A stretch of 64,000 bases of DNA from positions 200,405 to 264,404 of the forward strand of contig NW_003314265.1 of assembly GCF_000143415.4 (NCBI RefSeq), read 5' to 3'. Made by a program: the position numbers and the translations under genes. This document shows positions 12,635-35,911 of the stretch, piece by piece; positions within the stretch are counted from its first letter, which is position 1; every line of letters begins with the position of its first letter. The notes beneath the pieces were generated by a model that saw nothing but the letters and a program-made list of their open reading frames with translations, was not told where the DNA came from and searched no databases. The DNA comes from Selaginella moellendorffii. Lineage: Eukaryota > Plantae > Lycopodiophyta.

Positions 12635-12810
12635 TGTGAGTGCTTGGAATGTGGAAAGGGAATACAGAAAATATACATATCAATTAGCCCAAAAACCCTA
12701 GGTTATATACAAGAGCAAGTGGTTTAAATTGAAATTAATCTGACGGTTACTAAAATCCCACTATGCTAATATTAGTATACAGCATCGTAACCGTACATTT
12801 GGCCCTCACA
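12635..12810 (-). repeat. 3' LTR of element A (176 bp)
   Basis: TG...CA termini with 6-bp inverted ends, adjacent polypurine tract, and a matching start at 22671. Confidence 0.85.
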
Positions 12811-15103
12811 TCATCCCCTCCTCTTGGAATAATAGAAAACCATCAGGGTTCTCTTATAGACAGGCCGAGATCTGGAAGAACGTTAAGAGGAGGCATCGGT
12901 GGATCTGTAAGGGGTATTAATTGCTCCTGATCCCTTTGTATGAAGCATTTCAACCGTTGCACATGCACAATATCTAGAGGATTAGCTTGCTTGACGTCAT
13001 GCCAAACTTCGTAAACTTGTGGTCTAACTTGCTGCAACACCTGATACAATCCTTTCCACTATGCAAGGAGCCTCTTAGATAAACTACATATCATAACATG
13101 GGGAAATTTATAGACTAACACTAAATCATCCATTTTGTACTCTGCAGGTGGATGATGATGGGAGTTGTAGTGTTATTGTTGTCCCACTTGTACGTGGCTT
13201 AAGTGTTCGGCAGATTCTGCTCGGACAAGTGGAAGAATACTTATCAAATACCGATCCCATGACCTAGCATCAGTAGCTCATGGCAATCATAAAGGTAAAC
13301 CAAGCTCTGTTAGTAATATTGGATCATGACCATATAGGAATTTATATAGTGAAGCACCAACAAAACTCTACACCTCTGTGACATATGCATACTAAATAAG
13401 TGACAAATAACCATCCCAATTCGAATGCTAAAAGTTCACATACTTCGCAATCATCCCTTTGAATGTTCGAATGGGCCGTTCTACCAAACCGTTTGATTGT
13501 GGATGATAAGCACTCGTGAAAGTGTGGCGTATCCCCAATAGAGACGTCAAAATATGAAATGCCTCAGCCATAAATGCGGGACCATTATTTGAAAGAATCT
13601 ACTCTTGACAAGAATGCTGGAACACCACTCGATTGAGGAGGAAGTATCCAAGAGCAGTTGCAAAGGCGCTAGCAAGAGCATGAACTTCCACCCAACGACT
13701 CAAGTAGTCAGAAGCAATAATAATATACTCATTACCAGCAGTCGACTGTGGAAAAGGTCCTATAAAATTAAATGCCATCAACTCAAATGGATGAGAAATT
13801 GCAATTGACTCCAACTGTCCTTCTGTGGCACGAAAGGGAGTATTATGAGCTTAGCACCAAACACAGCTACACACATACCAGATAACATCACATCGCATCT
13901 CTGGCAAATAGAAAGACCTACACAACTTCTCAATTACACGACAATGTCCCATATGCCCACCTAAAACTAAAGAATCATGGTAGGCATGGAGAAACTGTGG
14001 AATAAAAACAGAAGGCACCACCAGCCGTAAATGGTCATCAAGATCTGTCCCCACAAAATAAAGAAGGCTGTCTTCAAGGCGGTATTGAGAATATAAATGC
14101 CAGAAAGGCAAGTTATCAGCAAGTGATGCAGGATTCTCAAACCCCTCTCAAAGCCTTTGAATTCACAGCTCAAACTTTTGAGCCTCGCGAACCTCATCAT
14201 GAGAAGGTAGATCTTGCTCTATGCCTTGTGAACACTAAATGTCAAGTACAGCAATTGCCGATGGCATAGAATCTTCGTCTAGAAAATCCACAGATGCTGG
14301 AACAACAGGCTCATCAGAAACATGAGAAGAGAGTGGAGAAGGAAGAGGAGCTTGAAAAAGGGCATCAGCATCAGCCATAGAACTCGCTAGGTGATAAACA
14401 ACATCAAAATCATATATTTAAAGCTTCAAAACCCATCAAGCAGTATGACCAACTAGGTTCTTTCACTTCAATAATGAAGTAATAGCAGCAGGGTCTCATT
14501 CAAGTAATGTCCGTGAACCATATAGATATGCATGAAGTTTCTCAAAACCCCAGACTACTGCTAAACACTCCTTCTTTGTCGTGGAGTAGTTCATCTCTAT
14601 TGGTTGTAATATACGGCTTATATACACAATGGGATGGTGCTGACCAGGCACACTCAAGCTTTCTTGCATCAACACTCCTCCAAGACTAATATTAGAAGCA
14701 TTCACGCGCAAAATAAAAGGTTGAGCGTAGTCAGGATATGCCAAAACCGGAGGAGTCGTCAATAGCCCTTTGAGATCCACGAACGCCCGCTCACAATCCG
14801 AAAACTAGATGAAAGATGACATTGATGACTTCAGCAATGCTCGCAACGGTGCAATAAGATTAGAAAGATGATCCACAAAACGACCGAGATATTGCACCTT
14901 GCCCAAGAAGTGCTGCACATCATTTACACACTTCAGAGTAGGGAACTTTAGAATACCCTTACGAGAAATACAATATCCAAGATAAGTCGTGTCCTTAGAC
15001 CCAAATACGCACTTTTGAAGCCTAATTTTTATATTCAAACTAAGATTCTTCCTTGACTAGAAACTAAAGTGTGTACACAAAGCTTGTCTTTTAAGTATAT
15101 GTA

Positions 15104-16299
15104 GAACTAAGGAAAAGGCTCCGATACCAAATTGTAAGCCACAAATTTTTCCTTTCCGATTTGCCAGCTTACCTCATCTATCCGTCCAACACTGCCTTGG
15201 CTTTTGCTAAGTTCCCTTGCCAAGGTTCCCGCCTATGGTACCAGCCCCTACTTGGTCCTACTTGGTTTCAGCTACTCACTGCACGAGCAACGGAGTGTTA
15301 GCCATCCATCCACGGATACCCAAATCTCTCCTAATCCCCCTCCCCGGGTTAGACTGGACTAAAAGTTCGGCTACACTCCCCGCAAGCACAAGCAACCAAG
15401 CACACCAAGCTTCCAGGTTCCTAACATCCCTTGGTACCACAAGACTTGATTATGGGACCCTCTAAATCCCAAGTCTTGGGTGCAACACTTGCTTCGGGAT
15501 GCCGGGGCGAAACACCGTGGTCTAACGGCCCGGTATGGGTACCTCTACGCCCCCTCTTTCATCCCGAAGGGGAGGTCCAAGCCCCTAAGAAGGGCGAGGA
15601 CCAATAAGCCGTATGGTACTTAGGTGGGGCACCACTCCACATGAGCCGGGAGCACCACAGTCGGTTTCCCTTTCGGGAGTGGGAGCTGCTCTTGAGCACT
15701 TCCTTGGATGGCCCCTCCGGCACCAACCAAGTCCATGCTTACTCCCACCCAAGGCCCCTCGGTCCCAGTCTCAACCTCAAGTCGGTTTGGAAGCCCCGCT
15801 AGAGAGTCCCTTCAAAATTGGTTCCTAGACCTCACTATCCCTACTATACTTTTGGAACCCCCTGCAGCCCCCCCCTGGGAGACGCACGCTTTGGGCTTTC
15901 ACCCCTTGACCCGTATTAGTATTTGGACTCAGTCTCTGGCTTGATCTCGGACTCGATCTCGGATCCGACTTCGGATTCGGTCTCGGACTCGATCTCGGAC
16001 TTGATCTCGAACCTGATCTCAGACCCGACCTCGGACTTGATCTCGGACCTGATCTCGGACCCGACCTCGGATTGACCTCGAACTCGGTCTCAGACCCGAT
16101 TTCGGATCTCGGACTCCGTCTCGAACTCGGTCTCCGAGTTGGCCTCGGACTCGATTCCGGATTCTATCTCGAACTCGGTCTCAGAGTCGGTCTTGGACTC
16201 GATCTTCGACTTGGTCCCATCCGATGAACTCTTTGTCATTTTGGTCATGCTTTCGGGGGTCCTTTATCCTACGACACCTCGGTGAGTTGGTTCCTTACA
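15104..16299 (-). mobile_element. LTR (15133-16299, TGTAAG...CTTACA) plus tRNA-iMet PBS of a second family, inserted into pol of element A
   Basis: Perfect 6-bp inverted termini. ggctccgatacca at ~15118-15129 reads TGGTATCGGAGCC on the minus strand. Host pol sequence resumes at 16300 (matches ~19723). Confidence 0.85.
15940..16220 (-). repeat. 12-bp tandem array (GATCTCGGACTC-like) inside the nested LTR
   Basis: Visible periodicity; reverse-complement relative of the arrays at 1420, 17205 and 20665. Confidence 0.85.
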
Positions 16300-17204
16300 A
16301 AACCTTGATTGAATGAGCATCCTTAATTGGAATTGAATTACGTGTCGCAATTTTGGCCCTAGATGATAGGTTAAATTTAAAGAGATTAGCATATTCTTTC
16401 ATGAGTTGATCAATTGTTGCAACACAAAGACTGTTAGAGGGATCGGAAAAGGGAAGAGTGGAACAAGATAGAAGTATAGAAGGAAGTAGTGGGGAGACAA
16501 AAGTAATGGAAGTAAAGGTAGAAGCAGAAGGATGATGAAGTACAAAAGTGAAAGGAATGAATGAATTATAAGGAAGTATGAGATAAAGGGGAAACACCTC
16601 AAAGTCACACTTGGCATGATTGTGTTGCAACCAATCCATACCAAGGATGAAGTCAAAAGCTTAACTTGGGACCACCTGCAATGACTAGAAAAACTCGAGA
16701 TCACCCACACATATAACTAAGTTTGCCTCATCCCATGCATATGCATGTGTAGAACCGTTGCCATAAAGAATGAAAACTAACTCCACCGCACGATGCAAGT
16801 GTAGATGGCAATGTGTGGCAACAAGTCAAGCAATAAAAGATAAACTTGAATCTGTATCAACCAATACGGAGAGAATAATAGAAAACTTTTTGTTATAAAA
16901 ATGAACTTAGAAAGTAAACACTAGATGAACTGGTGGCAAGTGGTCACTGACTTATTCGCACAAGGTCCCTTTTATGAGACATAAAATCCCTAGGTCCCAA
17001 AGAGGAGCTGAAAGAGTGCCATGTGGTAGTGGCTGAGACGGAAGCCAAACAAGTATAACACATATGGACTAAAATTTTCGACTTGAAAAGTCAAGAGTGG
17101 GACTGAAACTCCCAACAAAGGGCTCAAAGAACGAGCATGAAGCGAGCAATAAGTGAGTCTCTAAAAAAGGGACACAAAAGGACCAACACATGACATGTGG
17201 AAAG

Positions 17205-17545
17205 AGTCCAAGATGGATTCCGAGATGGACCCAAGATGGAGTCCGAGATGGAGTCTAAGATGGAGTTTGAGATGGAGTCCAAGAAGAACCCAAGATGGAC
17301 CCAAGATAGAGTCTAAGATAGAGTCTGAGAAGGACCCTAGATGGAGTCCGAGATGGAGTCCGAGATGGACCCGAGATGGAGTTTGAGATGGACCTGAGAT
17401 GAAGTCTGAGATGGACCCGAGATGGAATTGAGACTGAGACTAAAACCAAAACTGAGACCAAGATCGAGACTGAGACCAAAATTGAGACCAAGATCGAGAC
17501 TGAGTCCGAGTTTGAAACCGAGACCGAGTCCGAGTCTGAGCCCGA
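17205..17545 (+). repeat. 12-bp/6-bp tandem array (duplicate of 20665-21190)
   Basis: Visible AGATGGAGTCCG and GAGACC units. Confidence 0.9.
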
Positions 17546-20372
17546 GCCATAAATGCGAGACCATTATTTGAAAGAATCCGCTCTTGACAAGAATGCTGGA
17601 ACACCACTCGATTGAGGAGGAAGTATCCAAGAGCAGTTGCAAAGGCGCTAGCAAGAGCATGAACTTCCACCTAACGACTCAAGTAGTCAAAAGCAATAAT
17701 AACATACTTATTACCAACAGTCGACTGTGGAAAAGGTCCCATAAAATTAAATGCCACCAACTCAAATGGATGAGAAATTGCAATTAACTCCAACTATCCT
17801 TCTGTGGCATAAGAGGGAGTATTATAAGCTTAGCACCAAACACAGCTACACACATAATATCACATCGCATCTCTGGCAAATAGAAAGACCTACACAACTT
17901 CTCAATTACACGATGATGTCCCATATGCCCACTTAAAATAAAAGAATCATGGTAGGCATGGAGAAACCATGGAATAAAAACAGAAGGCACCACCAGCCGT
18001 AAATGGTCATCAAGATCTGTCCCCACAAAATAAAGAGGACCGTCTTCAAGGCGGTATTGAGAATATAAATGCCAGAAAGGCAAGTTATCAACAAGTGATG
18101 CAAGATTCTCAAACCCCTCTCAAAGCCTTCGAATTCACGGCTCAAACTTTTGAGCCTCGCGAACCTCATCAAGCGAAGGTAGATCTTGCTCTACGCCTTA
18201 TGGACACTGAACTTCAAGTACAGCAACCGCCATCGGCACAAAATCCTTGTCTAGAAAATCCACAGATGCTGGAACAATAGGCTCGTCAGAAACATGAAAA
18301 GAGAGTAGAGAAGGAAGAGGAGCTTGAGAAAGGGCATCAACATTAGCCATAGAACTCCCTGGGTGATGAACAACATCAAAATCATATATCTGAAGCTTCA
18401 AAGCCCACCGAGCAATACGACCAACTAGATTCTTCCGCTTTAATAATGAAGTAACAACAGCATGGTCACCTTCAAGTAACGTTCGAGAACCATGTAGATA
18501 TGCACGAAGTTTCTCGAAACCCCAGACTACTGCTAAACACTCCTTCTCTGTCGTGGAGTAGTTTATCTCCGTTGGTTGTAATGTACGGCTTATATACGCA
18601 ATGGGATGGCACTAACTAGGCACTCTTGAGCTCTCTTGCATTAACACACCTCTAAGACCAATGTCAGAAGCATCCACGTGCAAAATAAAAGGTCAAGTAT
18701 AGTTAGAATATGCCAAAATTGGAGGAGTCGTCAATAGCTCTTTGAGATCCCCGAACGCCCGCTCACAATCCGAAGACTAGATGAAAGATGACATTGATGA
18801 CTTTAGCAATGCTCGCAATGGTGCAATGCGATCAGAAAGATGATCCACAAAACGACCGAGATATTGCACCTTGCCCAGGAAGTGCTGCACATCATTCACA
18901 CACTTCAGAGTAGGGAACTTTAGAATAGCCACAAGTTTATCAGGATCAACTTGCAAACCCTCACGAGAAATACAATATCCAAGATAAGTCGTGTCCTTAG
19001 ACCCAAATACGCACTTTTGAAGCCTAATTTTTATATTCAAACTAAGATTCTTCCTTAACCAGAAACTAAAGTGTGTACACAAAGTTTGTCTTTTAAGTAT
19101 ATGTATGTCACAAGGGTACAAAGGTCACCTTTTAAGCTTTACAAACCTCATCAAGAAAAAGTAAATTCAAGTTTGACTACTTCAACTTTAAATCAACATC
19201 CTATAGCCGATCCAACACTTTACAAACATCACGGACGTGTTCCTCCCATGTCCCCTTTGAGTGGATCAAGACATCATTAATGAAGTCAGTAGTCACCTCC
19301 GGCATATCGCAAAGAACCTCGTCCATCATTTGCTGAAAAGTTGCTAAAGCATTGTTCAAACCAAACAACATTACTAAGAACTCATATAAACCAAACAGTG
19401 TACCAAAATTAGGCTTAGAAATATGCTCTTCTGCCATCAATACTTGGCAGTACCCAAAAGCAAGATTTCACTTAGTGAACCAATGACTTCTTCCTATACG
19501 ATCCAAAAGATCACCAGTGTGAGGAAGAGGGTACACATCCGGGATTGTCACTTTGTTTAACGGACAATAATCGATGTGAAACAAATACTCCCATTAGGCT
19601 TCGTCACAAGATGAGGTTCACATGCCCAAGGATTTCGCGACTTTCGAATAACACCCTTTCCAACATCTCCTTGACGTTTAAATATAAAATCTTGATCTCT
19701 TTGGGTGACTGATAACAAACAGAAACCTTTATTGAATGAGCATCCCCAATTGGAATTGAATTACGTGTCGCAATCTTGCCCCCAGATGATAGGTTAAATT
19801 TAAAAAGATTAGCATATTCTTTCATGAGTTGATCAATTGTTGCAACACAAAGACTATTAGAGGGATCAGAAAAGGGAAGAGTGGAACAAGATAGAAGTAT
19901 ACAAGGAAGTAGTGGGGAGACAAAAGTAATGGAAGCAAAGGTAGAAGCAAAGGGATGATGAAGTACAGAAGTGAGAGGAATGAATGAATTATAAGGAAGT
20001 ATGAGATAAGGGGGAAACACCTCAAAATCACACTTGGCATGATTGTGTTACAACCAATCCATACCAAGGATGAAGTCAAAAGCTTAACTCGGGACCACCT
20101 GCAATGACTGGAAAAACTCGAGATCACCCACACATATAACTAAGTTTGCCTCATCCCATGCATATGCATGTGTAGAACCGTTGCCATAAAGAATGAAAAC
20201 TAGCTCCACCGCACGATGCAAGTGTAGATGGCAATGTGTGGCAACAAGTCAAGCAATAAAAAATAAACTTGAATCTGTATCAACCAACACAGAGAGAATA
20301 ATAGAAGACTTTTTATTATAAAAATGAATTTAGAAAGTAAATACTAGATGAACTGGTGGCAAGTGAACCCCT

Positions 20373-21523
20373 TGATAATACTCCCAAAAGAAAGATGGAG
20401 GGGTCACTAACTTATTCGCACAAGGTCCCTTTTATGAGGCATAAAATCCCTAGGTCCCAAAGAGGAGCTGAAAGGGTGCCATGTGGTAGTGGCTGAGATG
20501 GAAGCCAAACAAGTATAACACATATGGACTAAAATCTTCGACTTGAAAAGTCAAGAGTGGGACTGGAACTCCCAACAAAGGGCTCAAAGAATGAGCACGA
20601 AGTGAGCAATAAGTGAGTCTCTAAAAAAGGAACACAAAAGGACCAACACATAACATGTGGAAGGAGTCCAAGATGGAGTTCGAGATGGACCCAAGATGGA
20701 GTCCAAGATGGAGTCTAAGATGGAGTTTGAGATGGAGTCCAAGATGAACCCAAAATGGACCCGAAATAGAGTCTGAGATATGGACCTGAGATGGACCCGA
20801 GATAGAGTCTAAGATAGAGTCTGAGAAGGACCCTAGATGGAGTCCGAGATGGAGTCCGAGATGGAGTCTGAGATGGACCCGAGATGGAGCTTGAGATGGA
20901 CCTGAGATGAAGTCTGAGATGGACCCGAGATGGAATTGAGACTGAGACTAAGACCAAAACTGAGACCAAGATCGAGACTGAGACCAAAACTGAGACCAAG
21001 ATCGAGACTGAGACCAAAACTGAGACCAAGATCGAGACTGAGACCAAAACTGAGACCAAGATCGAGACTGAGTCCGAGTCTGAAACCAAGACCGAGTCCG
21101 AGTCCGAGTCTAAGCCCAAGCTCGAGTCCAAGCCTGAGTCCGAGTCTAAGTCTGAGTCCGAGCCCGAGTCCGAGTCCGAGTCTAAGTCCGAATATTAATA
21201 CAAGCTGTTGGGTGAAAGCTCAAAGCAATTGTCCTCCGGCAGGGGGGGGGGGGGTGTTGGACCACTGGTGTGACCAAAGTGAATAGGTATGGCCTTAGCG
21301 TAACGGACTGATATATCAGTGGTACCTTAGAGTGTCGATCATGGTATCGGACATATGGAGCACTTGGACAAAGTGCAAATGTTAAGTGGCATGGATGCCA
21401 TTCTCGGGGTTAGCAAGCCCTAAGTCCTGAATCGGACTTATGGAGGTTGTGAATGAAACTCCTTCAAATGGTTAGAGGTATGGTTAAGTGATTAAAGTAA
21501 AATGGAAAAATTAGTCTCTTACA
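20373..21523 (+). mobile_element. Solo-LTR-like insertion with tandem array (20665-21190), lying between gag and protease of element A
   Basis: Ends ...CTTACA like the 15133-16299 LTR and contains gggtgaaagctcaaag. Includes a near-perfect 30-bp higher-order repeat (gactgagaccaaaactgagaccaagatcga x4). Left boundary uncertain. Confidence 0.7.
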
Positions 21524-22696
21524 CCTTTATTACTCACACGATTCCTCGTTTCCCATATGCATCTTGGTGTCTAGACCTTCCACTGTAGTAGCACCAATAA
21601 AACATTATTGATGCTAAGGTCTCCACCCAGGAAATGGAGACTGCCAATCTGGAAAACATCAAGAACACCAATAAGTGTGACCAACTTTATCATATGCCTA
21701 GCAATGAACATCACAGTCACCACCACGTCCTTGCCCTTTTCTTGGACTCGAGTAGCAACAGCATCAACCTCCATTGGAACAGGACCATCACCCACAGGAA
21801 GTGGAATTGAAGGATGTGCAGTGAGAAGTGGAAGAGGCAACATCTCATAATGTTGTGCCAAACAAAGATTATCGTCAAGGGTGGCTAGAGCAAGTGCATG
21901 CACAAGTCTGACAAGATTTTGACGAAGTGCTAGCTATAATATTCCTAGCTTGATCCGCTCTGACATATTTGGCTTTGCACGAAGCAAAAGGCTTCAGAAA
22001 CAAATGCCAAACTACATCACTGACTCAAATGGCCCTTAACAAAGACAATGCATTTGGTAAAAGGCATCATCATAATCATCGGCATGTCCGAATGCATATT
22101 TGAAGACGTTTGGGAGAACACTCCAATCCTCACGAGTGGCTGCACTCAAACCATTGTACCACTGCAGTTCCGTCCCTTGGAGACATGTGGGAAACTCATG
22201 CAAATATCGAGCATCATCCCAAGAATGATATATGGAAATCACTATGAAGTGATCGAACCAATGGTACACATCATCCCCAAGATTCATATGAAAGAACTCC
22301 GGCCGAATGTAAGGATTGGCACCAAGAGCAAGAGGAGTTGTACCATATGCCATGAATGCTTCCATCAACTGAGTTTGGTTGTTCAACTATAATTGCATAG
22401 CATCAAGCAATTGCACTAACTATTGCTCCAAAGTCAAAGGAGGAGGAGACTATTGCTCTACCATGAAGATGAATGAAAAGGAAAGAGCAAAAGAAGAGAA
22501 ATGAAAAAAAAAGCTAAAAGGAAAGGGAAATCTAAATAAAGGCTAGATCTAAACCAAAATCCTAAAAGGAAAGAACAAAAGAAAGGAAATGGAAAAAGCT
22601 AAATCTAAACTAAAATCCTAAATTGAAGCACTTCTCAAAGACAATCAAAAGTGCCCCTCACCTCCACCAATATAAGGGCATGGAATATGGAAAGGG

Positions 22697-25600
22697 TTTT
22701 GAGTAAACTTGAAACTTGTCCTAGAGATTAACTCTTGGTATTAAGGGTGGCTAAAGGTGAAAGCCCAAAGCGTGTATTCCTTAGAGGGGGGGGGAGGGGA
22801 TAGGTAAGTAGATCAGGTATGCTCGACCAACCTAAGGCGAAGTTTTACTCTTGCTTGCGTGCTTGTCCTTGTTCTATGTCCAACTTGGGTCTAAGCCCAA
22901 GTTCCATTTCATGCTAGCTGGTGGAGTACCCACATCCTTGTGTTAGGCCACCAGTATGCTAAAATACGAAATAGCACTAGACTTGTTTGGCTCTGTTTTG
23001 CATATTGGTCCTGGCATTGGGATGCTAGATGCTTTGGAACTATTCCAAGTCACTCCGAGCATTTGTCCCTTCGTTCCTTGGGCTATATGCTCAAGAGCCA
23101 TTTCGTGCTCCAGTGCTATCATTCCTTGGCTCCATGCTAGGAGTTTAGTTCCATTCCTTTGTTCAGTGGCCCAAGGCCCTGAAATTTGGGTTCTGCACCA
23201 CTGTCCTTTGAACATGTGGCATGTGACACATGAGGGTTTAGGTTCTGCTTCGTAGTTATCCTATGGTAAATCACCATAGAATAAAGAGTGACCATATGTG
23301 TTACATTTGGTATCAGATGATGAGTCTCGGCGAATACTATCTAATGAGATTGGGCAACTAGTCTTGTTGCATACATAGATGCAAAGGCTTACATTCGTTC
23401 CTTAGGTATGGATTTTAGTTACCTTTTTGTACCATATTATGTGAGCTTGCTCTTGGGCTCATAAAGTGGAAATTTTGCACGAGTTTGCGCTTGAGCTCGT
23501 AAATGAGGCATATTAGCAACTCGAGGTTACATTTTGAGTTAGCAGGATTAATGTTAGCCTATCGATGGTTACTATGAATTGTTCCATCTACCATGGGTGA
23601 AATTAAACCTTCCTTGGGTTTACTATGAGTGGCAAATAGACTGGTCTATAGCTGTTTAGTATGACACTAATAGATCTTTTCTAGGCATGATTATAAATGG
23701 ATCAATCAAGACTACAAGGATTAGTCTATTAATTCTAGTAGTCATTATTGTGCTCTCTCATAAACTTTTCTTAGATTGGACTAAAGACAGTGCAAATGCA
23801 AGCTTGAGGTTTAGTCAAATATGAGACTGAAAAGAGAGTCATTAGGGATGAAGGATCAAACACGTAAACCATTTTTTATTTTTTTGGAAAGATGATTTGC
23901 AACAAGGTGTGATTCATTGCACATATTCATATTATGCAATGAAGAGTCCCTATCTTGATGCATATTGGTTATGATGGTCTTTGAAATAGTGAGTTATAGG
24001 ATGAATAGTGATGAAGTACTATACCATTTTGTTCAGGCTTGCTATTGAAGACTTATGTTACAATGCTTAATTCGTTTTTGGGGAACTTTGTTATTGCTCC
24101 ATGAATAACTTGGTGTTAAATTAATTTTGAGTTTGGTTAGATAGAGAGTGGTATGAGCTTGTCCGTGTTATAAACAAAAGTTAATGGTGTTGGGTGTTGT
24201 AAATCTCTATTTGTGGAGTGTGGCATTTATATTGCATTTTGTCAAATCGAATTGGCATTTGATAGTCACATAAACTTTTGAAGTAATGACATGGGTGTTG
24301 CTCATGGTGTTGCTCAATTGGTGATCAAGTCATTGTGATTTTTCTATCATATTCATGTGATAGTGAACAATGTGTTTATGAAGTTGCTTGGTTAAACGAT
24401 AATCAAACCCAAAGTGGTTGATAGTGAAGTTAGTCTATTTGCACGTAATAACATTGTAGTAGCTTTGATTGGATTCTCAATAATGATTTATTATATGCTA
24501 AGCTTAAGTTGATTCCTTGATTCCTTGAGTTTGGCTATTGAGGTGTTGGAAAAAGGTTATAGCATTCATTTGCTATGGCTTGTTAGTTTATCCATTAACA
24601 CTTGAAGTAGATTGTTGGATGGAGAAGGTGTGTTGTTAAGGCATTGGCATTTCTAGCACTTGTGTTAATGGAAATTGTATTGTTATTTCAAGTGATGAAG
24701 AATTTTCTTTACACCTTGATTTTTTTATGTCATTTTTCTTGTTAGTATTTTGGCTTTACATTGGATCTTAAAGGTAATTGAAAAAGAGTGTTAGTGCAAT
24801 ATGGATATCTGAAAATATAGTCTTTGTGATCAAGCCTTAGATGTTTATTTTGCATTTAACAGATATCAGTATTAGATGTCAGAAATATGGGCAAAGATAT
24901 TCAAGGCTTAAACATACTATAGGTCTTAAGAATTTGTGTTGAGGTGAATTTATGTGAAGTTGTTAACTTGGTTAATTCTTGAAAGTTTGTATTCCTAGAC
25001 TTAGAGTTATTCTTTTTCTATGATGAAAAATTTTCCATAAATTTTCTTAGGTTTTTCCAATTGTTGATCTGTTGATCACTTTCCCCAAAAACCATTTCAA
25101 TTTCGTAAGCTTACAAACTAGTGAAGGGGTTGGAGTTGACTTCAGTTGGCTTACACGTTAGTAAGTAGTTTGTATAATGCAACCCGAAAGAGATGTTAAC
25201 TTTTAGAGCTAAATTGAGTTGATAAAATCTGAAGTTGGTGTAGAAAAGTGGCTGTTGCACTTTTTTTAAAAGGTGACCTTTGTGCCTTTCTTCTGTAGTA
25301 TTGTGCTTGGTGGCAAGTTCACCTTGCATTTTGTTAAACTCTATAAGAATAATAAGCTCTTATTAATCTTGATTTGGTCTTGGTGGCCCTGCGCCTTGGT
25401 TGAGGATGGTAATGTTCAACTTAGTTGCTTAAGGTTGAAATGTTGATACCCATACTATAGCTTTGTTTATAAGGAGGTTGTGTACCGATATGAGTTTATC
25501 TCATGGTCTTCACTTTAGTTTGAACTGAGTGTTGATCGTGCATAATTAACCTCTTCAAAGGATGCTTAGAGCTATTGGCTAAATGTGTTGATGAGCTTAT

Positions 25601-27300
25601 TGTAGTTGAGTTGGATTCATGTAGTCATTTAGTTTATGCTTGTCCATGAACCTTTATCTTGTGCCTAAAGTATTACGTTCATGTTGGACAAATACATGAC
25701 TCGATAGCGCGAGTTTAGTGTTTGGGTCTTGTGAAAAGGCAAATTGAAAGAATGATTGTTAGTTGCTTTGCAATTAATATATAAGCAACGAAAGGGAATG
25801 ACTCGAGAGACAAAACATAATGGTTCAAATATGGAGGGAAATGGCCCATGAATAAGAGTGCACCCCTTTTCCAATCGATTAAAAGTCTTGGGATATTTGG
25901 GGTTGAGTGTTTTTGGGTTTAAATAGTACTAGGCTGGGTGACCTCCCGAGAAGTCTAAATTCAAGAGCTTGCTTGTAGACTTTGTCAAGGACTATAACAC
26001 TTGCTTTATTTGATGATGATTTAGCAATGATGAGCTTGCTTAAATTTCGTTAAATTTACATGGGTTTCCCATGTTAGCAAGTCTACTTTACCTTTGTCGA
26101 TATCATTTTGGTTGCATTTATAATGTTAAATTTTATTGAGTCTTGGATGTGGTGAATTACTCCTTGATGATGTGTTATCTATAACTGAGTATTGTTGAAG
26201 GATTGATCTTAGATATTAAGTATAGTATCTTTAACTTTGGTTAACTTGGTTATTGAAAACCTTTAAGTGGTGATTCACTCTTGCTTTCTTTTAACTTTGT
26301 TTTGGTGTTGATGGCATTGAAGCAAAGCCCTATTATTGACATTGTTGATGTTGGGATTCGAATAAAATAAGATATCTCTCTGTAGAATTGATATTAAGTT
26401 TCATTAGTCATGATATAAATAGTATTGATACTTCGGCTGTAGCTTTATGTTATTGATATTCATGCATTTGCTAGTTAGCTACTATGTTGACATTCAAATG
26501 AATTGAGTAGTGAGTTTGAGTTAATTGTGTTCTAGATAAGAATATTTAGCAAGGGTTGAGCTTTAGCTTTTTCTTGAAAAATGATTTAATTATGGACAAT
26601 GCTAACTCTACAAAAGAAAAAGTTAATGATCGATATTGGAATGTTTGAATCCTTGTTAGATTTGAATTATGATATATTGATTATTAATGATTCTTCTTGT
26701 ACTTATTATGAAATGAATTATATTTTGTTATCGATGGATTCATGAAGGACTGGTTTGATAATCACTTATTGAGCATAGCTCCATTGTGCTTAATTTTTGG
26801 ATTGATGTAAATGTGCTTTTCATTAGTTTTGCATTATGAAGTTTAGCTTATGGATATGTTGAGGAGTATATTATTGATTATGCCATGATTTCTTCTTTAA
26901 TATTAAAGTTAATTCATATGAGATTTATGATCATTGTTTAAGAAGACCTGGCTATAGACTTCTTCAAATTTTTTGTTCTTTGAGTTTTATGCTCATTGTT
27001 CTATTCGTAATAATTTGGTTAGAAAGGCATTTTGGCTCGTTAGCTTCAAAATTGAAGTTGGATTTTACATTTGGCAATCACCTTGACTATCATCTAAGAT
27101 AGTTGATTATCTTTATTAAAGGTTTTGCTTGATTATTGTTGATATAGAATGATTTGCCATTTTTTGGGATGGTAGATTCTTTATTTGATGATGATTATGC
27201 ATTTCTTCATTAATGGGATAATTGATGATCTTTCATGATAGTTAGTTATTCTTTTTTAAAACTTATAATAAACTTGAAAACAGTATTAGTTTTTTTAAAG
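22697..27300 (+). mobile_element. Heavily decayed Met-primed LTR retrotransposon interrupting the 5' LTR of element A
   Basis: LTR-like segment containing ggtgaaagcccaaagcg and ending GTTACA at 23305, followed by PBS TGGTATCAGA (23308-23317). Downstream sequence is AT-rich with no ORFs. Right boundary is a guess. Confidence 0.55.
25901..25956 (+). other. 5S rRNA-derived fragment (internal control region), Cassandra-like
   Basis: TAGTACTAGGCTGGGTGACCTCCCGAGAAGTC versus plant 5S TAGTACTAGGATGGGTGACCTCCTGGGAAGTC (3 mismatches in 32, consensus from memory). Degenerate A-box upstream; the 5' half of 5S is absent. Confidence 0.75.
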
Positions 27301-27903
27301 GGTCTAGTGTTTAATAGACACTCTAAAGGCTAGCATGAACATCAAGATTTAATCAGTTATAGTTTTTTTTCCATTCAAAATCATGTTTCTTAGTTTGCAA
27401 ACTTTTTTCCATTTCTAATTCATAGGAGCAGTCAACATTGACAACCATAGGGCTGTAGCTGCCTCAGAGCTCATAAATACCAACATAATCCTGAAAGAGG
27501 TGGAAAAAATGGATAAACATAGAAGCTGACAATATATAAGTGTCAATGTGCAATTGTATACATCACCATTAGGTTTCTATGTGAAGTCTCACAAAGTATG
27601 CCAAGGTCCCAAAGATGGGATTTTCAGTTCCAAGTGAGGTAATGGCTTTGTCAAAAAGGTTAGAAAGTTTTTTAAATGGCTTAGAGTGAAGAATATTGAC
27701 TCTTAGGCAGCTAAGGATTAACAAAGAAATTGTGAGATGTAAGCAATTCTGTCATGAGGATATGTTGGTGAGTTTGAAAGGCTTTGCCAACTACTCAGAA
27801 TTGGCTGGGCAATTACTAGTTATAAGATAATGCTAATCTCATAATAACAGGTTTTAGACCTTTAAACTTTTAAATTGAGGCTGGTGTATCTAGGGCAACC
27901 ACC

Positions 27904-28443
27904 ATGGATAAGCAGGGAGTGGTCGAATCCGCGGCTGCTCAATCCCCGAGCTTCTTGGAGCTCCTCAAGAGCTGGTTCCTTTGTGGATGGCTCGCGGACA
28001 AGGCAGCCCTGTTGAAGACTCATGGCCCCAGCTACATCGCGGTGGGATCTCGATCGCAGTCCGCTTCGTCCTCCTTGGATCCACAATCGGGAGCCTCGGG
28101 GCCCAAGCCCTACATGAGGCCTTCGCGATGGACACAGCTGGTAAGAAAATGCCGAGCCAGGTTCCGGAGGGGCTGGATCCATGATGGCAATCCCCAGGGC
28201 GGGCAATTCGATCCACACCAGCAGCACTACTACAAGATGGACAGCTACGAGCGGAATTTCGACAGAGGGCGGGAGTTTTGGGAGGATCTGGCGCTCATCG
28301 GCCAGCCCCTCGAGGAGAATTCGCCACGTCGGTGGGCGATCCCGGAGGCGTCGGTGCCAGATCCCGTGTGGATGATCACCGCGTCCCAGGAGGAGATCAA
28401 GGACAAGGCGGCGGCGCTAGCTGCCAGATCCGGCAATAAGTAG
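27904..28443 (+). CDS. Uncharacterised plant protein, paralog of 10991-11653
   Basis: ACCATGG start context. KSWFL, YMRPSRWTQLVRKCRA and YYKMDSYERNFDRGREFWEDL match the paralog. Confidence 0.8.
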   Translation: MDKQGVVESAAAQSPSFLELLKSWFLCGWLADKAALLKTHGPSYIAVGSRSQSASSSLDPQSGASGPKPYMRPSRWTQLVRKCRARFRRGWIHDGNPQGGQFDPHQQHYYKMDSYERNFDRGREFWEDLALIGQPLEENSPRRWAIPEASVPDPVWMITASQEEIKDKAAALAARSGNK

Positions 28444-28530
28444 CAGCGCTGCTCCATTGGATTTGGCTGTTTGTACAGGATTTATTATAGTTTTCTTCGT
28501 TCTCTTCTAGCCTAGGGTATAACGCTAGAA

Positions 28531-29415
28531 ATGCGGGCTCGGGTGAGATCCGCGAGCCTGGCGGCGTTCAAGCGGCGCCGCGAGGAGTCCTTCCACCGCA
28601 CGGAGCTGTGGCCCGGGCAGCGCGAGTTCCTCCAGGCGGAGCGCGAGCGGAAGAAGCGCCTGGGGATCCTCACGCGCAAGGTACGCCCCTTCGCCGCCGC
28701 CAACCAGTGCCCCCGGCGGCGCGCGCAGCCGTCGGTGGCCACCGAGAACGCCACCGGCACGCACGTCGCGTTCGTGAGGGCGGCCCCGCCCATCCCCACC
28801 ATGAACAGCCCGCTCCTCCGGCAGCTGGAATCTAGGCGGGAGAGCGACACCTTCGTACTCGACACCAGCGTCGCCTGCCTCTTCAAGGATCTCAGGCTGG
28901 AGCCATCGCAGGTGACGGCCGACCGGGAGAGGTTCCTGGAGCTCCTCAAGGGCGCCAAGCTCGCGGCTCCGCCGGTGGCCTGGAAGGAGTACGCGCTGTT
29001 TGGGCTGTCGAGCGCGATCCCCTTCTCGACCATGTCCGAGAAGAGGCTCGAGGATGCCAACCGGGTGGTGGACTCGCTCATCGGGCTCTTCCGGCGAGCT
29101 CCCAAGGGGAAGTGGCTGGCGATGAAGGAGAGTCACAAGAGCCGCGTCAAGGACTACTTGTTCGTCGTCCAGTCGGCCATGCTGTATCCCAAGACCACCA
29201 TTCTCACCAATGACTCCGACTTTGGGATCTTCGAGGTGATGGCCGGGGATATCGAGCAGCTCTTGTACCGGAGGCACAACTCGCTGTCGCTAAGCTTGAG
29301 CAGCGTTTCCATCTTCAATGTGGCCTACGACTTGGGGCTGGATTTGAGGTGCAGCCGCCGCAAGGGGAAGTTTCTCTTCCCTCAAGGCTCTCGAGGAAGC
29401 AGGGGCAGTAACTAG
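28531..29415 (+). CDS. Stand-alone PIN-domain (VapC-like) putative ribonuclease with an Arg-rich N-terminal extension
   Basis: Intronless 294-aa ORF with strong GC3 codon bias. Motifs FVLDTSV (D111), AWKEY (E153), KDYLFVVQS (D208) and ILTNDSDF (D228, D230) appear in PIN order and spacing. Confidence 0.75.
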   Translation: MRARVRSASLAAFKRRREESFHRTELWPGQREFLQAERERKKRLGILTRKVRPFAAANQCPRRRAQPSVATENATGTHVAFVRAAPPIPTMNSPLLRQLESRRESDTFVLDTSVACLFKDLRLEPSQVTADRERFLELLKGAKLAAPPVAWKEYALFGLSSAIPFSTMSEKRLEDANRVVDSLIGLFRRAPKGKWLAMKESHKSRVKDYLFVVQSAMLYPKTTILTNDSDFGIFEVMAGDIEQLLYRRHNSLSLSLSSVSIFNVAYDLGLDLRCSRRKGKFLFPQGSRGSRGSN

Positions 29416-29917
29416 CAAAGCCGGCCATCTTTCGGAAAACAGAGAGCGTTATAAAGCAGGGAAAAAGGAAAAGCTGGATTTTTCTCGCTGCTTGAGAACG
29501 ACCCGGGGCTTGGACTGATCTGCAAAGTGAAATCAAGACGCGTCAGTAAAGCAGCAACAACACGATTTTGATCGGGGACGAAAAGTCGCAAGTTTTTACG
29601 AGAGAAATCAAAAGGAAACTTGCCAGAGCTTGCTGGGATGTGACGGGAATCTCATGTGCTGCCGCTCTAGTACCGCTCCCTTTTATTCCAAGGCCCTCTG
29701 TCATTCGGATACGTGGTCTTCTTCTCTTCGCCCACAAGGTGTGATATAGTTAAGTTGATATCTTGGTTTAGAACCTCCTGGGAAACTTAGAAAAGAGCTC
29801 CAAGGTCCAGGGAACGAGTTTGTGCGTGCCGCAGGGTAGAAGAACTTCCACTGCGAGGTAGAACTTCTTCTCTCCAGCCACTGACTCTTCCAAGCAGCAG
29901 CGAAGATTTGCGTTTCC

Positions 29918-30573
29918 ATGGCCACGAAAGGAGCTGCTGGTTCCTCTTTTAGTATCGGAGGAGTGCTTAGCAGGAGGAGCAAAATGGCAGTGAGAGCAAG
30001 TAGCAGCAGGAACACCGATGAAATCGTTGATGCAAAGAATCTAGTTGCTACTCGATCAAGAGTAGCGGAGGAAAAGCCTCCAAGACTCTGCACACTGCGA
30101 GCGTTCAGCCAAGACGGGGGAGACTCCATAGCCATGGGATCAAGCGCTTGGGACTCGGCCGCCTCGTCTGTTTTCCTCAAGCAACTGGCTGCCAGCGTCC
30201 AAGCCACGGCCCAAGCTCAAGACTTTGAGACGATCTCAGGCCGCGCTGCAATGGTACGTTTCTCTCCTTTTGGCTTTCGAGGCAGCTCCTTTGCTCACGG
30301 ATGATTCCTTCGTCTTTGCAGGTAGCTTTCGCCATAGCTCTAGGACTAGAGGTTGTGACCGGCAACAATGTGTTCAAGGGAATAGAAGTCAAGGAGCTGG
30401 GCCAAACGGTGGCCTTCTCGGCAGCGTGCGTGATTTGTATGGCCGCTTTCACTGCTGGCTGGAGTGCAAAGAATCAGATTAGGCTCTACATGACCAAAGG
30501 ATGCCAGGATTTAGTGGAGTTTATTCTTACCGACGCAATAGATGCCATGTTCTTCGACCAAGATGATTTATAA
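29918..30573 (+). CDS. SEP2: Stress-enhanced protein 2 (two-helix LHC-like), chloroplast; intron 30254-30321
   Basis: Transit-peptide-like N-terminus and chlorophyll-binding motif ETISGRAAM|VAFAIALGLEVVTGN. Confidence 0.85.
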
Positions 30574-31001
30574 ACGTCCCACTTGAATTTTTCCTGGATC
30601 AAGGCAGCGATCACGTAAACAAGCTCGAGAAGCTCTCTTACTCTTGAAGAAGCTTTCTTCATTTCACTAAAAATATCCGCCTTGGAGATGTGACCTTCGC
30701 AAACTTAAGCCTGCAAAGAACCAGATTATAGCGCAAAATGTAAGATGCGGATTAAAAAACTCAGCCCACAGACTGAAGTGCTTTTCACTTGTTTAAGCAA
30801 AGCCGATAAGACAACTAATGATAATCTAGAGTCTAGGCTCCTGTACCTTATTCGACCGAGGACCAGATCATTCCCGGTCAGAGAAATTCCTTCCACTAAA
30901 CCTGCAGGAGGATCAGCATCAGTGAGCAGGCCCGGAAAGCTGTCGAGAACTTTTGGAAAAAATAATTCCTACCTTTGAGGTCCTCGATACCCAGCCACTG
31001 C

Positions 31002-33048
31002 TCATAACTTTCCATCATTGCTCGTCCTGTCCTTCGCCTTCATCAATCCCTCCACCACCGAGCGAGCAATCGGATGATACTTCGGACGAGCCTTTGCAAA
31101 TACTTTCTTTGCAAGCTCCATGCCGGCTTCGTCCTTGCTGTCCAGCAGACCACTGTAGAGAGGACGAAGGTACCGCATTCTTCCCACCATCATCAGCGCC
31201 TGCTCGATGTCATTGTAGCAAGCCTGGAAACCCGAGTTGGCCGCAATCACCAGGAACGCAACCCGGAGATCCCAGTTGGGACTCCTCGACAGATGAAACA
31301 CCGAGTCCAGATCACGGAGTATCATCACGCTCGCCACTTTCTTTGGAAGGCTCTCGAGATAAACTTGCCACTCCAGAGCTTGCCACCCCAAAGCTTCCTC
31401 CTTGAGTGACTCGAGGTACTTCTTCCAGGCTTCTTCATCGTAACTCTCGCTTTGGGACTTGAATTCCGCCACCATCCCCAAAACTCTCTCCAGAATTCCA
31501 GACTTTGGCTTCGGAGCGTCGGGAGGCATGCCTGGCTCGTAAATCCATCTATCGACGTTCACTTTCTCATCAATCCCCGGGAAGTAATCTCTCAGAAACA
31601 CCAGGAACGTCTCCGTGTCGATCGACGTAAAGCGAAACTTGGCGATGTAGCGTTCGAGAAAGTCGTCAAATGCCGGACGACTGACCTCGTCCTCGAGCCT
31701 CTTGAGAAAGAAGCAGCCTTTCTCGTATGGAACTTGGGAGTATACCTCGTCGGGATCCACATTCTCCTGGTTGGTCTTGAGCTTGGTAAACTCGGGCCTA
31801 TCCTTGAATCGCTCGATCTCCTCTTCCCATCCGTTCCATCCCAGCCCGTAGTGAAGAGCCACCCGCTCCTTCCCGTCCAAAACTTCCACGATCCGCCTTT
31901 CCGCATAGGTGGTGAATCCCTGAGAGACCGCCATTCATTCTTTAACGTCAACATCCTCATCATAATTTACAATCAAACATCAAGAACAGTAGTACCAAGC
32001 ATGCTCGAGCAATCAAAGAGACAAGACCGCTCGAGGCAGGCAAGATTAACAAAAAGAAAAGAAAAAGATGATCTAAACAAAACAATTGGAATCACGCAAG
32101 CGAGAGAATTCTCACCTCGTTGAGCCAGAAATCGTTGGCGGAGGCATTAGTGATGAGATTCCCGGTCCAGCTATGAGCGAGCTCGTGTGCCACCACCGAG
32201 GCGCCGCTCCGATCTCCAACGATCACCGTCGGCGTCAAGAACACCATCCTCGGGTTCTCCATCCCTCCATAGGGAAAGCTTGGCGGCAACACCAGCATGT
32301 CGAATCTCTCCCAGTCATACGGCCCAAACAGCGCCTCCGCCTGTTCGATCATCCCCTCGGTGGCCGCGAACTCGCGCGCCGCCGCCTTCACCATGCCCGG
32401 CTCGCCATACACCCTGGATCGAGCTCCCAGCTCCTCGCAAGCGATCTCTCCCGCCGCGAGAGCGAAGAGATAGGGCGGGATCGGCTGCTCCATCTTGAAA
32501 ACCTCGACCGCGCGCCCGGGAGCGATCGCTTCCAGCCGCTCCACATGCGCGGCGGACATCACCGCGCGCATCTCCTGGGGGATGTTGATCCTCGCCGAGA
32601 ACCTGAATCGCGCCGAGGGCGTATCCTGGCAGGGAAAGATGGAGCGCGCGTGGAGAGCTTGGCAATGCGTGTAGACGAAGGGGTGCTTCCCGGAGGAGGC
32701 CTGCGATGGATCAAGCCACTGGAGGGCGGACGCTTGCGGCGATGTTGTGAAGAGGATCAAGAAGCGGCTCGTCGGCGAGGGGAGATGGAGCACGAGGCGC
32801 TGGCCCTTGATCGGGTGCCGCTCGCTCGAAATATCGAATGCCAGTGGCTTCTTGGCCGGCGAGGAGGAATCGAAGGCGCCCCGGACGAGCAGATCCCGTG
32901 TGTCGAGGACGAAATCCCCGGAGAACGCCTGGCGCAGGGTGAAATCGGCGCTGCCGACGATGATCCGCCTTTCAAAGTCGAGGAAGAGATCGAGCGCGAT
33001 GCTGTCGGTGAGGAGCTGCGAGAAATCTGCGTAAGAATGTGGATCCAT
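31002..33048 (-). CDS. M1 zinc aminopeptidase, leukotriene A4 hydrolase-like; exons 33048-32116 and 31919-31002
   Basis: DPHSY, CQDTP, GGMENP, HELAH-x18-E (WLNE|GFTTYAER), VPYEKG and VGRMRYLRPLY. Confidence 0.95.
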
Positions 33049-33308
33049 ATCCGGTCGCTGCTCGCAAAAAAGAAAGGAATCGCAACTACTGTGAGTGGCG
33101 AGGGAATGATCCGGCCAAGCTTTGAAGTGAGCTTCGCTCGCGCCTGGATTTATAGCGGCCTGGCACACTGACAGTCACCCTAAACCACTTCTTAAGCTTA
33201 AGATACAATCGGGGCCGTCATACGACTTCAACGGCTGGATCACAGTCCAGGTAACACATGCCCTAAAATATTGTCCAAGGAATCTTCTTGTGAATATACT
33301 TCGTAGAT

Positions 33309-35911
33309 CTACATTGTTCTAGTCTTCTTCTTTCTTTCTTTCTCGTCAGCCTTTCGCTTCCTTTCCTTGATCAGCTTCACTTCTTCCTTCTTCTTGGTGT
33401 TGCTCATCTGTAGCAGCAAGGTCATTAGCACAAGAATGTAACCTTGTCACTAGAAAAAAATGAAGAAAAGTCTTACCTCCATGGCTTGGTAGAGATTTCT
33501 CTTGTTCCTGGACAGCATCATCTTCGCCATGTCCTTGGGATCGTCCTCTTTCGGTGGCGGAAGGACCTCACTTTCTGGCACATCCGCAAGAGCTTCCTCT
33601 TCTCCTGAGAAAGATTTCCCCGCCAGCTCTCTCCTCAAGTCTTCGGCATAGGATTTCTCCATCGCAGCTAGCTGCAAAGGCAAACCACACAAGAATGCTT
33701 ACAATGCAATGTTTTCCAGACGTCCTACCTCGCGTTCCTTTTCGGCTTCAAGATCTTCCCGACGCCGAGCAGCAGCCGCAACCAAAAGTTCACCTTCATC
33801 GATCCCGGATTCACTTCCTGGCAGTGGCGCCAGCTGCTGGTTCGCCGCAAGCCGCAGCCTTTTGATGGTATCAGCGTACTCTGGAACGTGTCCCTCCGCC
33901 TCGTTATCCACAAACGGCGATAGGTGCGGCGGAGGAATCCTGGCATTCTAGATTCAGTGACGCGAGCCACGCAGAGCAGCATCACTCACCTTCCAAGGAG
34001 ATAAGGCTCCGTTGGCAGCAGGATCCTGTTGTTCGCACAATCGTACACCCATTGCGGCTGGACATAATGCCTCGATAGAAATTTGTGTCCTTGTGTTGGG
34101 CGATCTACAATCTGTGATTGAACAAACGATCAGCCTAGCTCGTACGAGAATGAAGTTACCTGATGTGTAATGACTTCGTCATTTTCCGGAAAAGGGGCGC
34201 CATCTCCATCCCAGGATACTGCACCTCCGAAAGAACGAATAACAAACAATAACGACTCCCTCGGAACCTGGAAGGTCCAAACGTTAGAAAAGGAAAGAAA
34301 AAACACGAAGTCAATCTCTTACCTCTCTCCCCAAAAAGAAGGTGAGATTTTGAAACAAGCGCCTGCAGGTCCGTGTTTCCAGATCCTCATCTTCGATAAC
34401 GTCATCCACGTCCATAGCTTCAGTTTTGACTTGCACTGGAACGTCTTGTGGCTTCTCCTTCTCCTTCTCTATTTGCTTCAGTCTATCTTGCAAAGACGCT
34501 AGTCTTGCTTGAGACTCCGCTATCCTCTTCTCTTTGTTTTCTGCTTCCATTAGGCTTTGCTGTTCGTCCACAGAAACAGGAGCATCGTCTTCTTTCGCCG
34601 AGGCATCTTCCAAGAGAGGGGCAGATGTAGTTCCGCCAGCCAAGTCCTTCATCAGTGCATAGAGTTCTGGAAGTTCAAAACGACGTTAAACGGAAATTTT
34701 ACTCACGTAAGAGTTCACAACCTGCAGCAGCCTGCTCCAATCGAGGATCCAAAACTGGAGGATAGTTTAATCCCAGGGAATGGTAAAGTTTAAAATTGAC
34801 GAAACCCAGAAGCGTCTGTAGAAGATAAGCTGATCAATAGGAGAAAAAACAGAAAACAGCAACAAGTACCTCATAAAACTCGGCAAATGTAAGCATCACC
34901 CGAAAGTCGACGTCCTCCGGAAGAACCTGATTGAGAACATGTGGAGTCAAGTACGTGATCTTCTGGCCCGATACTTCGACCTGCAAAGTAGAAAACCATT
35001 GGTCACTATCAATTTAGACTGAAACTTAGCACACCTGATAGTAGATCCCTTTTACAGAGACGAATATTTTCCGTAAAGAGTGTGTTCGCGTAACATATGC
35101 TTGCCATTCAAGACTCAGCCTGCCACCAAAACATCACTACGTGATTCAGGGAAAAGAATGGTCTAATACCTTCGACAACTATGCACCCGCTCAAATGGAA
35201 CGCTATGGGTTGTGTCAGCCGGTAGAGTAGCGAACAAATGGATCATAGTCAGAGGATCCTCCAAGTCGCGAACGGCATCAATAAAAGAAGGATACCTGAT
35301 ACACCAACAAATATCTATCTTTAACGAAGATTACACAATTACTTCTTACCTCTCCTTGACTAGATGATCAAGTGTGAAAGATGGCCGATTATTTTGCAAA
35401 CGATGCGCAAGGTCTGTATTGTATTTGGCCCTGGCCTTGGTAATTTTCTTCTCGTAAGCACGAATCTCCCTGTAAGTAGTGTTACAAAATGTAAAAGAGA
35501 GAGAGAAAAAAAACCAAGGATAGGAAGAATTACCTGCTTTTCTCGAGGAGTGGCTCGTGCAGAAGGAAGTTTATGTCCTTGACATGATAGTAAGTTTTGT
35601 TCTGCCCTTCAAATTTTTTCTTTGGTTCTCTGGGATGGATTCCCTTGAGAATGCACAACCGCCTGTGTAAATTTGACGATTTCAAGATAAGAACCAGTAG
35701 CGTCTCCAAATACCTGAATTCGGGGAGCTTGATTTGGAGCCGATTGAGCGCCTTGTTCCGAGTAATGTATTTCGCTGCATTCCCCGGATTCCCGCGCCTG
35801 CCAGTGTGGAGCTTGCGCTTGGCCGCCTTGACAGCGTTCTTCACCTGCTTCACCTGCGAAGACGAAAGATCTGAGCACATTGCTCGAGCATCGCGACGAA
35901 ACACGCACCAT
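33309..35911 (-). CDS. PES1: Pescadillo homolog (ribosome biogenesis, BRCT domain), multi-exon
   Basis: [61 protein letters not shown] and PPHLSPFVD. Confidence 0.93.

Follow-up and report, generated by a model that had tools for sequence, protein, structure and literature searches.

Does a nuclear gene of Selaginella moellendorffii encode a ribonuclease with a PIN domain of the VapC group, and, if so, is this gene a bacterial toxin gene that came to reside in a plant or a gene of the plant itself? VapC-group PIN domains are among the commonest toxin domains in bacteria and archaea. Free-standing genes of this group are almost unknown in eukaryotes, with 1 to 11 eukaryotic sequences in each of the PF01850 clusters of a 2017 census (PMC5499597). 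The question was raised by a stretch of 64,000 nucleotides (nt), here called the window, located on scaffold GL377569.1 (4.1 Mb), the forward strand of which contains two consecutive open reading frames (ORFs), ORF1 with 179 amino acids (aa) at 27904..28443 and ORF2 with 294 aa at 28531..29415. With moderate confidence, ORF2 can be read as an independent, unspliced, and lineage-restricted nuclear gene, the product of which would be composed of a basic arm, a highly divergent PIN-like domain of the VapC group, and a tail.

The original prediction, made from the sequence alone, had described the position and length of ORF2, M91 at 28801, and four motifs with acidic residues, all of which are present in the translation. 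The motifs are FVLDTSV with D111 (28861-28863), WKE with E153 (28987-28989), KDYLFVVQSA with D208 (29152-29154), and ILTNDSDF with D228 (29212-29214) and D230 (29218-29220). They are located in a candidate PIN-like catalytic core of aa 103-250 (28837..29280), to which the pattern test, the language-model neighbours, and the substitution rates described below apply. A PIN active site contains an Asp after S1, an Asp or Glu at the start of H4, an Asp or Glu after S4, and a fourth acidic residue that is usually positioned after S2 (PMC5499597). At the level of the sequence pattern, D111, E153, D208, and D228/D230 fit this definition in order. Their spacing of 42/55/20-22 compares with 36/59/21 for D10/E46/D105/D126 in the FitB-type VapC of the Synechocystis plasmid pSYSA (L002:1399-1827:-), and the first and the last acidic residue span 117-119 residues in ORF2 and 116 in this control. 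The claim that order and spacing of the motifs are VapC-like is consequently in agreement with a verified VapC protein.

Evaluation of these motifs needs to consider how often they may occur by chance. A four-block PIN pattern was written from the VapC controls, partly post hoc because ORF2 had already been seen; the VapC controls were the pSYSA VapC and 120 FitB-type VapC proteins, and a PIN_3 and a DUF5615 protein from the same plasmid served as further controls in other tests. The pattern matched 115 of the 121 VapC/FitB proteins and ORF2, none of 400,000 composition-preserving shuffles of ORF2, and, among the 171 stop-to-stop ORFs in the window with 100 aa or more, ORF2 only. The first and last blocks occurred at the right distance in 2 of 400,000 shuffles, and multiplication with the two middle blocks led to a rough probability of about 4e-8 per ORF. 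Alpha/beta proteins often contain Asp motifs at strand ends. The value of about 4e-8 is generous because real alpha/beta proteins are richer in such motifs than shuffles and because the pattern was partly post hoc. The neighbours in a protein language model pointed in the same direction. DUF4411, a PIN-like family, came first for the whole ORF2 with a score of 0.90, and of the first 100 named clusters for aa 100-255, 93 or more were PIN (PF01850), PIN_3, or DUF5615, with scores of 0.89-0.92.

Several results weigh against a PIN domain in ORF2. The language-model matches had 117-128 of 256 features in common, which is the range of distant relatives or of chance according to the calibration of the tool, and since the model probably keys on the motifs already seen in ORF2, its support is not independent. 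No match to the PIN clan was obtained at an expectation value (E) of 10 or below in Pfam, NCBIfam, PADLOC, or PHROGs, using the whole ORF2, aa 91-294, a 141-aa core, or halves as queries. In the Pfam test run alongside the ORF2 core, the pSYSA controls were recognized, VapC as PIN with 5.8e-11 and the PIN_3 protein with 1.9e-20. A search of the sequences in the PDB with phmmer yielded no match to ORF2. A hidden Markov model (HMM) of the VapC/FitB proteins scored ORF2 with -1.4 bits when all HMMER filters were off, hhalign against VapC/FitB aligned the last motif only (P=0.35), and the mean local-alignment z-score against the VapC family was 0.34 for ORF2 compared to 3.8 for the PIN_3 and 1.7 for the DUF5615 control. 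AlphaFold2 models, made from the single sequence since there were no homologues for an alignment, were mostly helical and unreliable, with a predicted local distance difference test (pLDDT) score of 48 for aa 91-294 and 41 for aa 103-250. Finally, and concerning the reading of ORF2 as a whole, it is located downstream of the 179-aa ORF1 on shared RNA contigs, where a eukaryotic ORF is poorly placed for translation if it does not possess its own transcript.

Fold searches with the first AlphaFold2 model, using Foldseek against the PDB and VIA-align, returned generic helical matches only. This combination of AlphaFold and Foldseek had been proposed as a check in the original prediction; with models of this quality, it spoke neither for nor against a PIN fold or a clustering of the acidic residues. 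The only match in the profile libraries was that of the N-terminal arm to HAD with E between 0.04 and 0.07, which was discarded as spurious: the arm has no DxD motif and the score was far below the cutoff.

Alternatively, ORF2 may encode a real, constrained, and lineage-specific protein with another fold or without an enzymatic role, and the PIN-like motifs may be a coincidence. This is unlikely, albeit not to be taken lightly. All profile, HMM, hhalign, and pairwise tests were negative while the controls passed, the language-model neighbours with their few common features may come from a model misled by the motifs, the AlphaFold2 models were helical and of low confidence, and very many ORFs had been examined with a pattern partly written with ORF2 known. 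A coincidence would have to account, however, for four correctly ordered blocks that are spaced as in VapC, which has a chance of about 4e-8 in shuffles, and for an acidic span that differs from that of the VapC control by 1 to 3 residues. Moreover, about 9% of the PIN-like proteins escape Pfam anyway (PMC5499597). ORF2 thus probably possesses a PIN-like fold, as judged from its sequence, because the pattern is very unlikely by chance; this probability cannot be set higher because nearly all non-PIN proteins, but only this minor portion of the PIN-like proteins, remain outside Pfam.

Which kind of PIN-like protein may ORF2 be? Since the profile tests were run and failed, it cannot be assigned to PF01850, PIN_3, DUF4411, or any eukaryotic PIN family. 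Membership in VapC/PF01850 is not supported for the originally proposed VapC-type gene, because no profile, HMM, hhalign, or pairwise signal appeared even though the PIN_3 control was detected. ORF2 and the VapC proteins of PF01850 nevertheless have in common a motif hhhDT[NS]h, a Glu about 40 residues later, an Asp followed by a hydrophobic helix, and a motif hhTxDxDF, furthermore a core of about 140 residues, a single unspliced ORF, and another ORF immediately upstream on the same RNA. They differ in that neither sequences nor profiles are significantly similar and that ORF2 is a nuclear plant gene, the product of which is extended by 100 Arg-rich residues at the N-terminus and by a tail of 45 residues. 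DUF4411 (PF14367) and PIN_3 (PF13470), the nearest language-model neighbours, are single-domain families of 145-200 aa with four predicted acidic active-site residues as in ORF2, but they are bacterial and archaeal and their HMMs do not match ORF2.

In eukaryotes, Fcf1/Utp24, Utp23, Nob1, SMG5/6, Swt1, Dis3/Rrp44, NYN/LabA-like proteins, and PRORP are nuclear-encoded, PIN-like, metal-dependent RNases; ORF2 is likewise nuclear-encoded and its RNase activity is predicted. None of the Pfam profiles for the known eukaryotic families (Nob1, Fcf1/Utp23/24, SMG5/6, Swt1, Dis3, NYN, PRORP, and DUF1308) matched ORF2, and the accessory domains of eukaryotic PIN-like proteins, such as a zinc ribbon or PPR, OST-HTH, 14-3-3-like, and RNB domains, are not present, so that the earlier statement that no known eukaryotic PIN architecture is visible holds. 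The NYN families are expanded in green plants, and NYN domains also end in a motif similar to hhSGDSDF (PMC5499597). Their first motif is DxxN, in contrast to the VapC-type DTS of ORF2. Taken from its sequence features, ORF2 is probably a new and very divergent member of the PIN-like superfamily, and if the fold is right, it should work most like a PIN nuclease of the VapC group.

The protein would begin with a basic arm of about 100 residues that is probably disordered, followed by the PIN-like domain from about aa 105 to 250 and a short low-complexity tail. Given a PIN fold, D111, E153, D208, and D228/D230 should cluster at the C-terminal edge of a parallel beta-sheet and, helped by T112/S113, coordinate Mg2+ or Mn2+, and the protein may act as a metal-dependent endoribonuclease that cleaves RNA. 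The N-terminal 90-100 residues contain 17 Arg and no Asp and have a net charge of +14. In the Arg-rich extension of aa 1-90 (28531..28800), delimited by its composition, the ratio of non-synonymous to synonymous divergence (dN/dS) between two haplotypes was 0.36, which is based on four changes only. The GC content at third codon positions (GC3) of these 90 codons was 0.97, indicating that the arm is translated sequence. The arm would supply either RNA binding or subcellular targeting, in the latter case possibly as a signal for the nucleus or nucleolus or as a presequence for an organelle. Translation of ORF2 could start from an own transcript beginning in or near the 87-nt spacer between both ORFs, or could follow read-through of the ORF1 mRNA. 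If all this is correct, the enzymes of plant RNA metabolism would gain a small but genuine new member, an expressed and selectively maintained PIN protein of the VapC group from a vascular plant of an early-diverging lineage.

The status of ORF2 as a functional gene could be evaluated by comparison with a second haplotype. Scaffold GL377574.1 (L004) is 97% identical at the DNA level to the window positions 4814-12315 and 27258-33885. It contains alleles of ORF1 (L004:14667-15203) and of ORF2 (L004:15294-16175), both intact, in a region (L004:14667-16175) with no annotated gene. The ORF2 allele has 294 codons and differs by 10 substitutions, 7 of them synonymous and 3 non-synonymous (T75A, H78R, and K171E), and by no insertions or deletions (indels). 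Divergence was lowest in ORF2 with 1.13%, followed by ORF1 with 1.85%; it was 3.3% plus 32 gap columns in the 3' stretch 29416-29917, 4.6% in the spacer 28444..28530, and 6.9% in 27258-27892 upstream of ORF1. The dN/dS according to Nei and Gojobori was 0.14 for ORF2 (P=0.003 versus neutrality) and 0.06 for its aa 101-294, compared to 0.19 for ORF1. Variants in RNA contigs agreed with this result, with five synonymous changes and a single non-synonymous change in ORF2, no indels in its coding region, and a 3' untranslated region (UTR) that was dense in single-nucleotide polymorphisms (SNPs) and indels.

ORF2 is therefore a real, transcribed gene that both haplotypes carry in intact form and that is subject to purifying selection. 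The original prediction had regarded it as intact and lineage-restricted, which is borne out by the RNA contigs, the second allele, the dN/dS, and the homologue searches described below, and had named missing expression and missing purifying selection as arguments against itself; contigs from four studies and the dN/dS of 0.14 demonstrate the presence of both.

A gene model already exists at this site but joins the two ORFs; neither this annotation nor the expressed ORF1 upstream had been considered in the original prediction. The only database protein matching ORF2 is SELMODRAFT_405471 (EFJ34275.1, 471 aa), annotated as a hypothetical protein, and neither the locus tag nor its accessions were mentioned in any paper found in a literature search. 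The model is assembled from three pieces, which are a 15-codon exon at about 27615-27662, ORF1 cut at 28365, and ORF2 from 28516 on. An intron at 28366..28515 (+) would fuse ORF1 to ORF2 with the model sequence ...VPDP/GITLEMRARV at the joint. Accordingly, the GenBank model may be right, and a plant-specific N-terminal part would carry the PIN-like domain in one spliced protein of 471 aa.

The RNA evidence consisted of contigs from four public runs from four different studies, placed on 26500-31500; the contigs show neither starts, ends, nor strand of a transcript. In all four runs, the region 26500-27835 had zero cover and the GT..AG joint 30252>30321 of the next gene was present, which indicates that the runs represent RNA and not DNA. 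The contigs span 27893-29987, with starts at 27893-27968 and 3' sides reaching 29776-29987. The contig of X1 (27913-29447, zero mismatches) and that of X2 (27945-29987) both crossed the annotated intron without a joint, with depths of 82-195 in these two contigs. The joint 28365>28516 was absent from the contigs of all four runs, although contigs drop rare isoforms, and the annotated first exon had no RNA cover in any of the runs.

These contigs make a fused protein improbable. The GT..AG pair of the annotated intron does keep the frame, both ORFs are on the same RNA contigs, and, rare isoforms being lost from contigs, there may be a minor spliced form. On the other side, in addition to the missing joint, the two contigs running through, and the uncovered first exon, 28366-28440 within the "intron" holds 25 codons of ORF1, 21 of which end in G or C (0.84, counted by hand). 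The haplotypes differ at three sites in the five "exon" codons that precede the ORF2 ATG in the model, and two of these differences alter the residue, which in our reading of the alignment is variation like that of non-coding DNA. Moreover, the paralogue and the language-model neighbours of ORF1 are stand-alone proteins of 115-217 aa. Due to the retained "intron" stretch and these stand-alone relatives, the locus was read as two ORFs and not as one fusion.

In the main RNA form, ORF2 is not spliced to ORF1. ORF2 has been annotated before, but as a hypothetical protein only and probably with a wrong structure. The practical result is that SELMODRAFT_405471 probably joins two separate genes by mistake and begins with a spurious exon, and that the allele of the other haplotype lacks an annotation. 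The "intronless" character that had been attributed to ORF2 stands as far as the RNA contigs are concerned, which contain no joints inside ORF2, and does not agree with the GenBank gene model, which has introns.

The two ORFs are separated by the AT-rich spacer of 87 nt at 28444..28530 (+), reaching from the ORF1 stop to the ORF2 ATG and delimited by the sequence, the contig breaks, and the haplotype divergence. Contigs ended in it at 28512 (X3) and 28480 (X12), and the mean depth of the downstream contig was about 3-fold lower in both cases. The spacer contains TTGTA and ATTATTATA, which we take to resemble plant polyadenylation signals. This suggests that many ORF1 transcripts end within the spacer.

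Did ORF2 come from a bacterium? An ORF2 that is a vapC-type toxin gene, recently acquired from a GC-rich bacterium and subsequently domesticated, would explain its single unspliced ORF, its bacterial and archaeal language-model neighbours, and its base composition. The GC content by codon position was 0.585/0.473/0.898, and no other ORF of the window reaches this GC3 of 0.90 (0.5-0.81 in the others). The GC3 that had been called host-like therefore deviates in the same direction as in the other ORFs but is more extreme, and is only roughly host-like. VapC-group PF01850 families being almost absent from eukaryotes (PMC5499597) also favours a bacterial source.

The searches for homologues did not support such an acquisition. 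With the 471-aa model, phmmer against 1.84 billion cluster representatives found the model itself and a second Selaginella protein, P0002, that matches the ORF1 part only; among these sequences, no Selaginella protein was similar to the PIN-like part at E of 0.001 or below. A word-seeded search of 5.8 billion proteins at E of 10 or below, with the whole ORF2 and with the domain, gave no homologue of the PIN-like part, tblastn against 72,556 plasmids none of ORF2, and a scan of 185,579 prokaryotic species genomes likewise none. A scan of viral contigs, aimed at widening the PIN_3 control family, yielded nothing. Since there is no homologue to compare, horizontal transfer is without support, and the possible horizontal acquisition considered originally was not backed by a bacterial, archaeal, or viral homologue in any of these searches.

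The surroundings of ORF2 are those of a plant gene. Its immediate downstream neighbours encode a peptidase M1 of the leukotriene-A4-hydrolase type, Pescadillo, a galactosyltransferase, and syntaxin-18. Contamination as the source of ORF2 was considered and rejected, because this is a normal plant nuclear locus with ordinary plant genes and with synteny in both haplotypes. Whatever its origin, ORF2 is now a resident nuclear gene, as indicated by this synteny, the plant-type neighbours, and the additional N- and C-terminal segments. With the homologue searches empty, the locus syntenic in both haplotypes, and a 100-residue basic extension plus a tail that VapC toxins lack, a recent bacterial acquisition is very improbable, and the framing of ORF2 in terms of a bacterial toxin and horizontal transfer is not supported.

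The position of ORF2 behind another ORF on the same RNA is reminiscent of VapBC modules, and the upstream partner has to be considered in this respect. ORF1 (27904..28443, +) is the gene of a small plant-specific protein, as judged from the ORF listing, a paralogue, the RNA contigs, and the haplotype comparison. Unlike the upstream gene of a VapBC module, it is not a recognizable antitoxin of the VapB, AbrB, RHH, or HTH type; no antitoxin or DNA-binding domain was matched in Pfam or PHROGs. Its only sequence relative is P0002 (SELMODRAFT_408947), a Selaginella protein of 217 aa that matches aa 71-150 of the 471-aa model with E 4e-7 in phmmer. An allele of SELMODRAFT_408947 is located in the window at 10991-11650 (+) and is a tandem paralogue of ORF1. 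The motif YK.[DE]SYERNFDRGRE.W.DL is common to ORF1 and this allele, and the family has no Pfam model. The language-model neighbours of ORF1 were unnamed stand-alone proteins of Streptophyta with 115-153 aa and 198-200 of 256 features in common.

No PIN-like ORF follows P0002, so that the adjacency of ORF1 and ORF2 is not a duplicated module. Since its relatives are plant proteins that stand alone, including a tandem paralogue without a PIN partner, ORF1 does not qualify as a VapBC antitoxin. There is only a slight chance that ORF1 and ORF2 are a eukaryotic two-gene module on one RNA, similar to a toxin-antidote pair, in which ORF1 would restrain or deliver a VapC-like nuclease and which would belong to a rapidly evolving group of orphan PIN-like nucleases specific to Selaginella, possibly serving genome conflict or organellar RNA processing.

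That ORF2 is no gene at all but an ORF arisen by chance in the GC-rich 3' UTR of a read-through ORF1 transcript is hardly credible, because its location downstream of ORF1 on shared contigs and the expectation of long ORFs in GC-rich DNA, here also in antisense with 250 and 197 aa, are opposed by a strong three-base periodicity with the GC3 of 0.90 and by the prevalence of synonymous changes (7 versus 3, zero indels, dN/dS 0.14) next to noncoding flanks that diverged about 3-fold faster.

Downstream of ORF2, a 3' untranslated or intergenic stretch (29416..29917, +) extends up to the ATG of the next gene at 29918; conservation of this transcribed stretch is poor. Many SNPs and indels were located at 29447-29734, and the 3' UTR of ORF2 is an indel hotspot (29447-29474 and 29734) in the RNA contigs and in the two haplotypes: 14 nt are inserted at 29469 and at 29473, and 12 nt are deleted at 29734. 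At the start of the downstream gene, which encodes 195 aa, two contigs of 139 nt each were present at 29958-30096 in X1 and X2. One of them was identical to the window and the other had 8 differences, so that both haplotypes of this gene appear to be expressed.

On the other side of the locus, the two haplotypes differ by about 12 kb, with window position 12635-27258 corresponding to L004:11551-14035. This region is AT-rich DNA of about 14.6 kb in the window and about 2.5 kb in the other haplotype. A unit of 3.5-4 kb is present twice in the additional DNA, at 13.5-17.5 kb and at 17.5-21.2 kb, with about 95% identity between the copies. Internal arrays with a period of 12, 18, or 30 nt are located at 17200-17580 and at 20660-21200.

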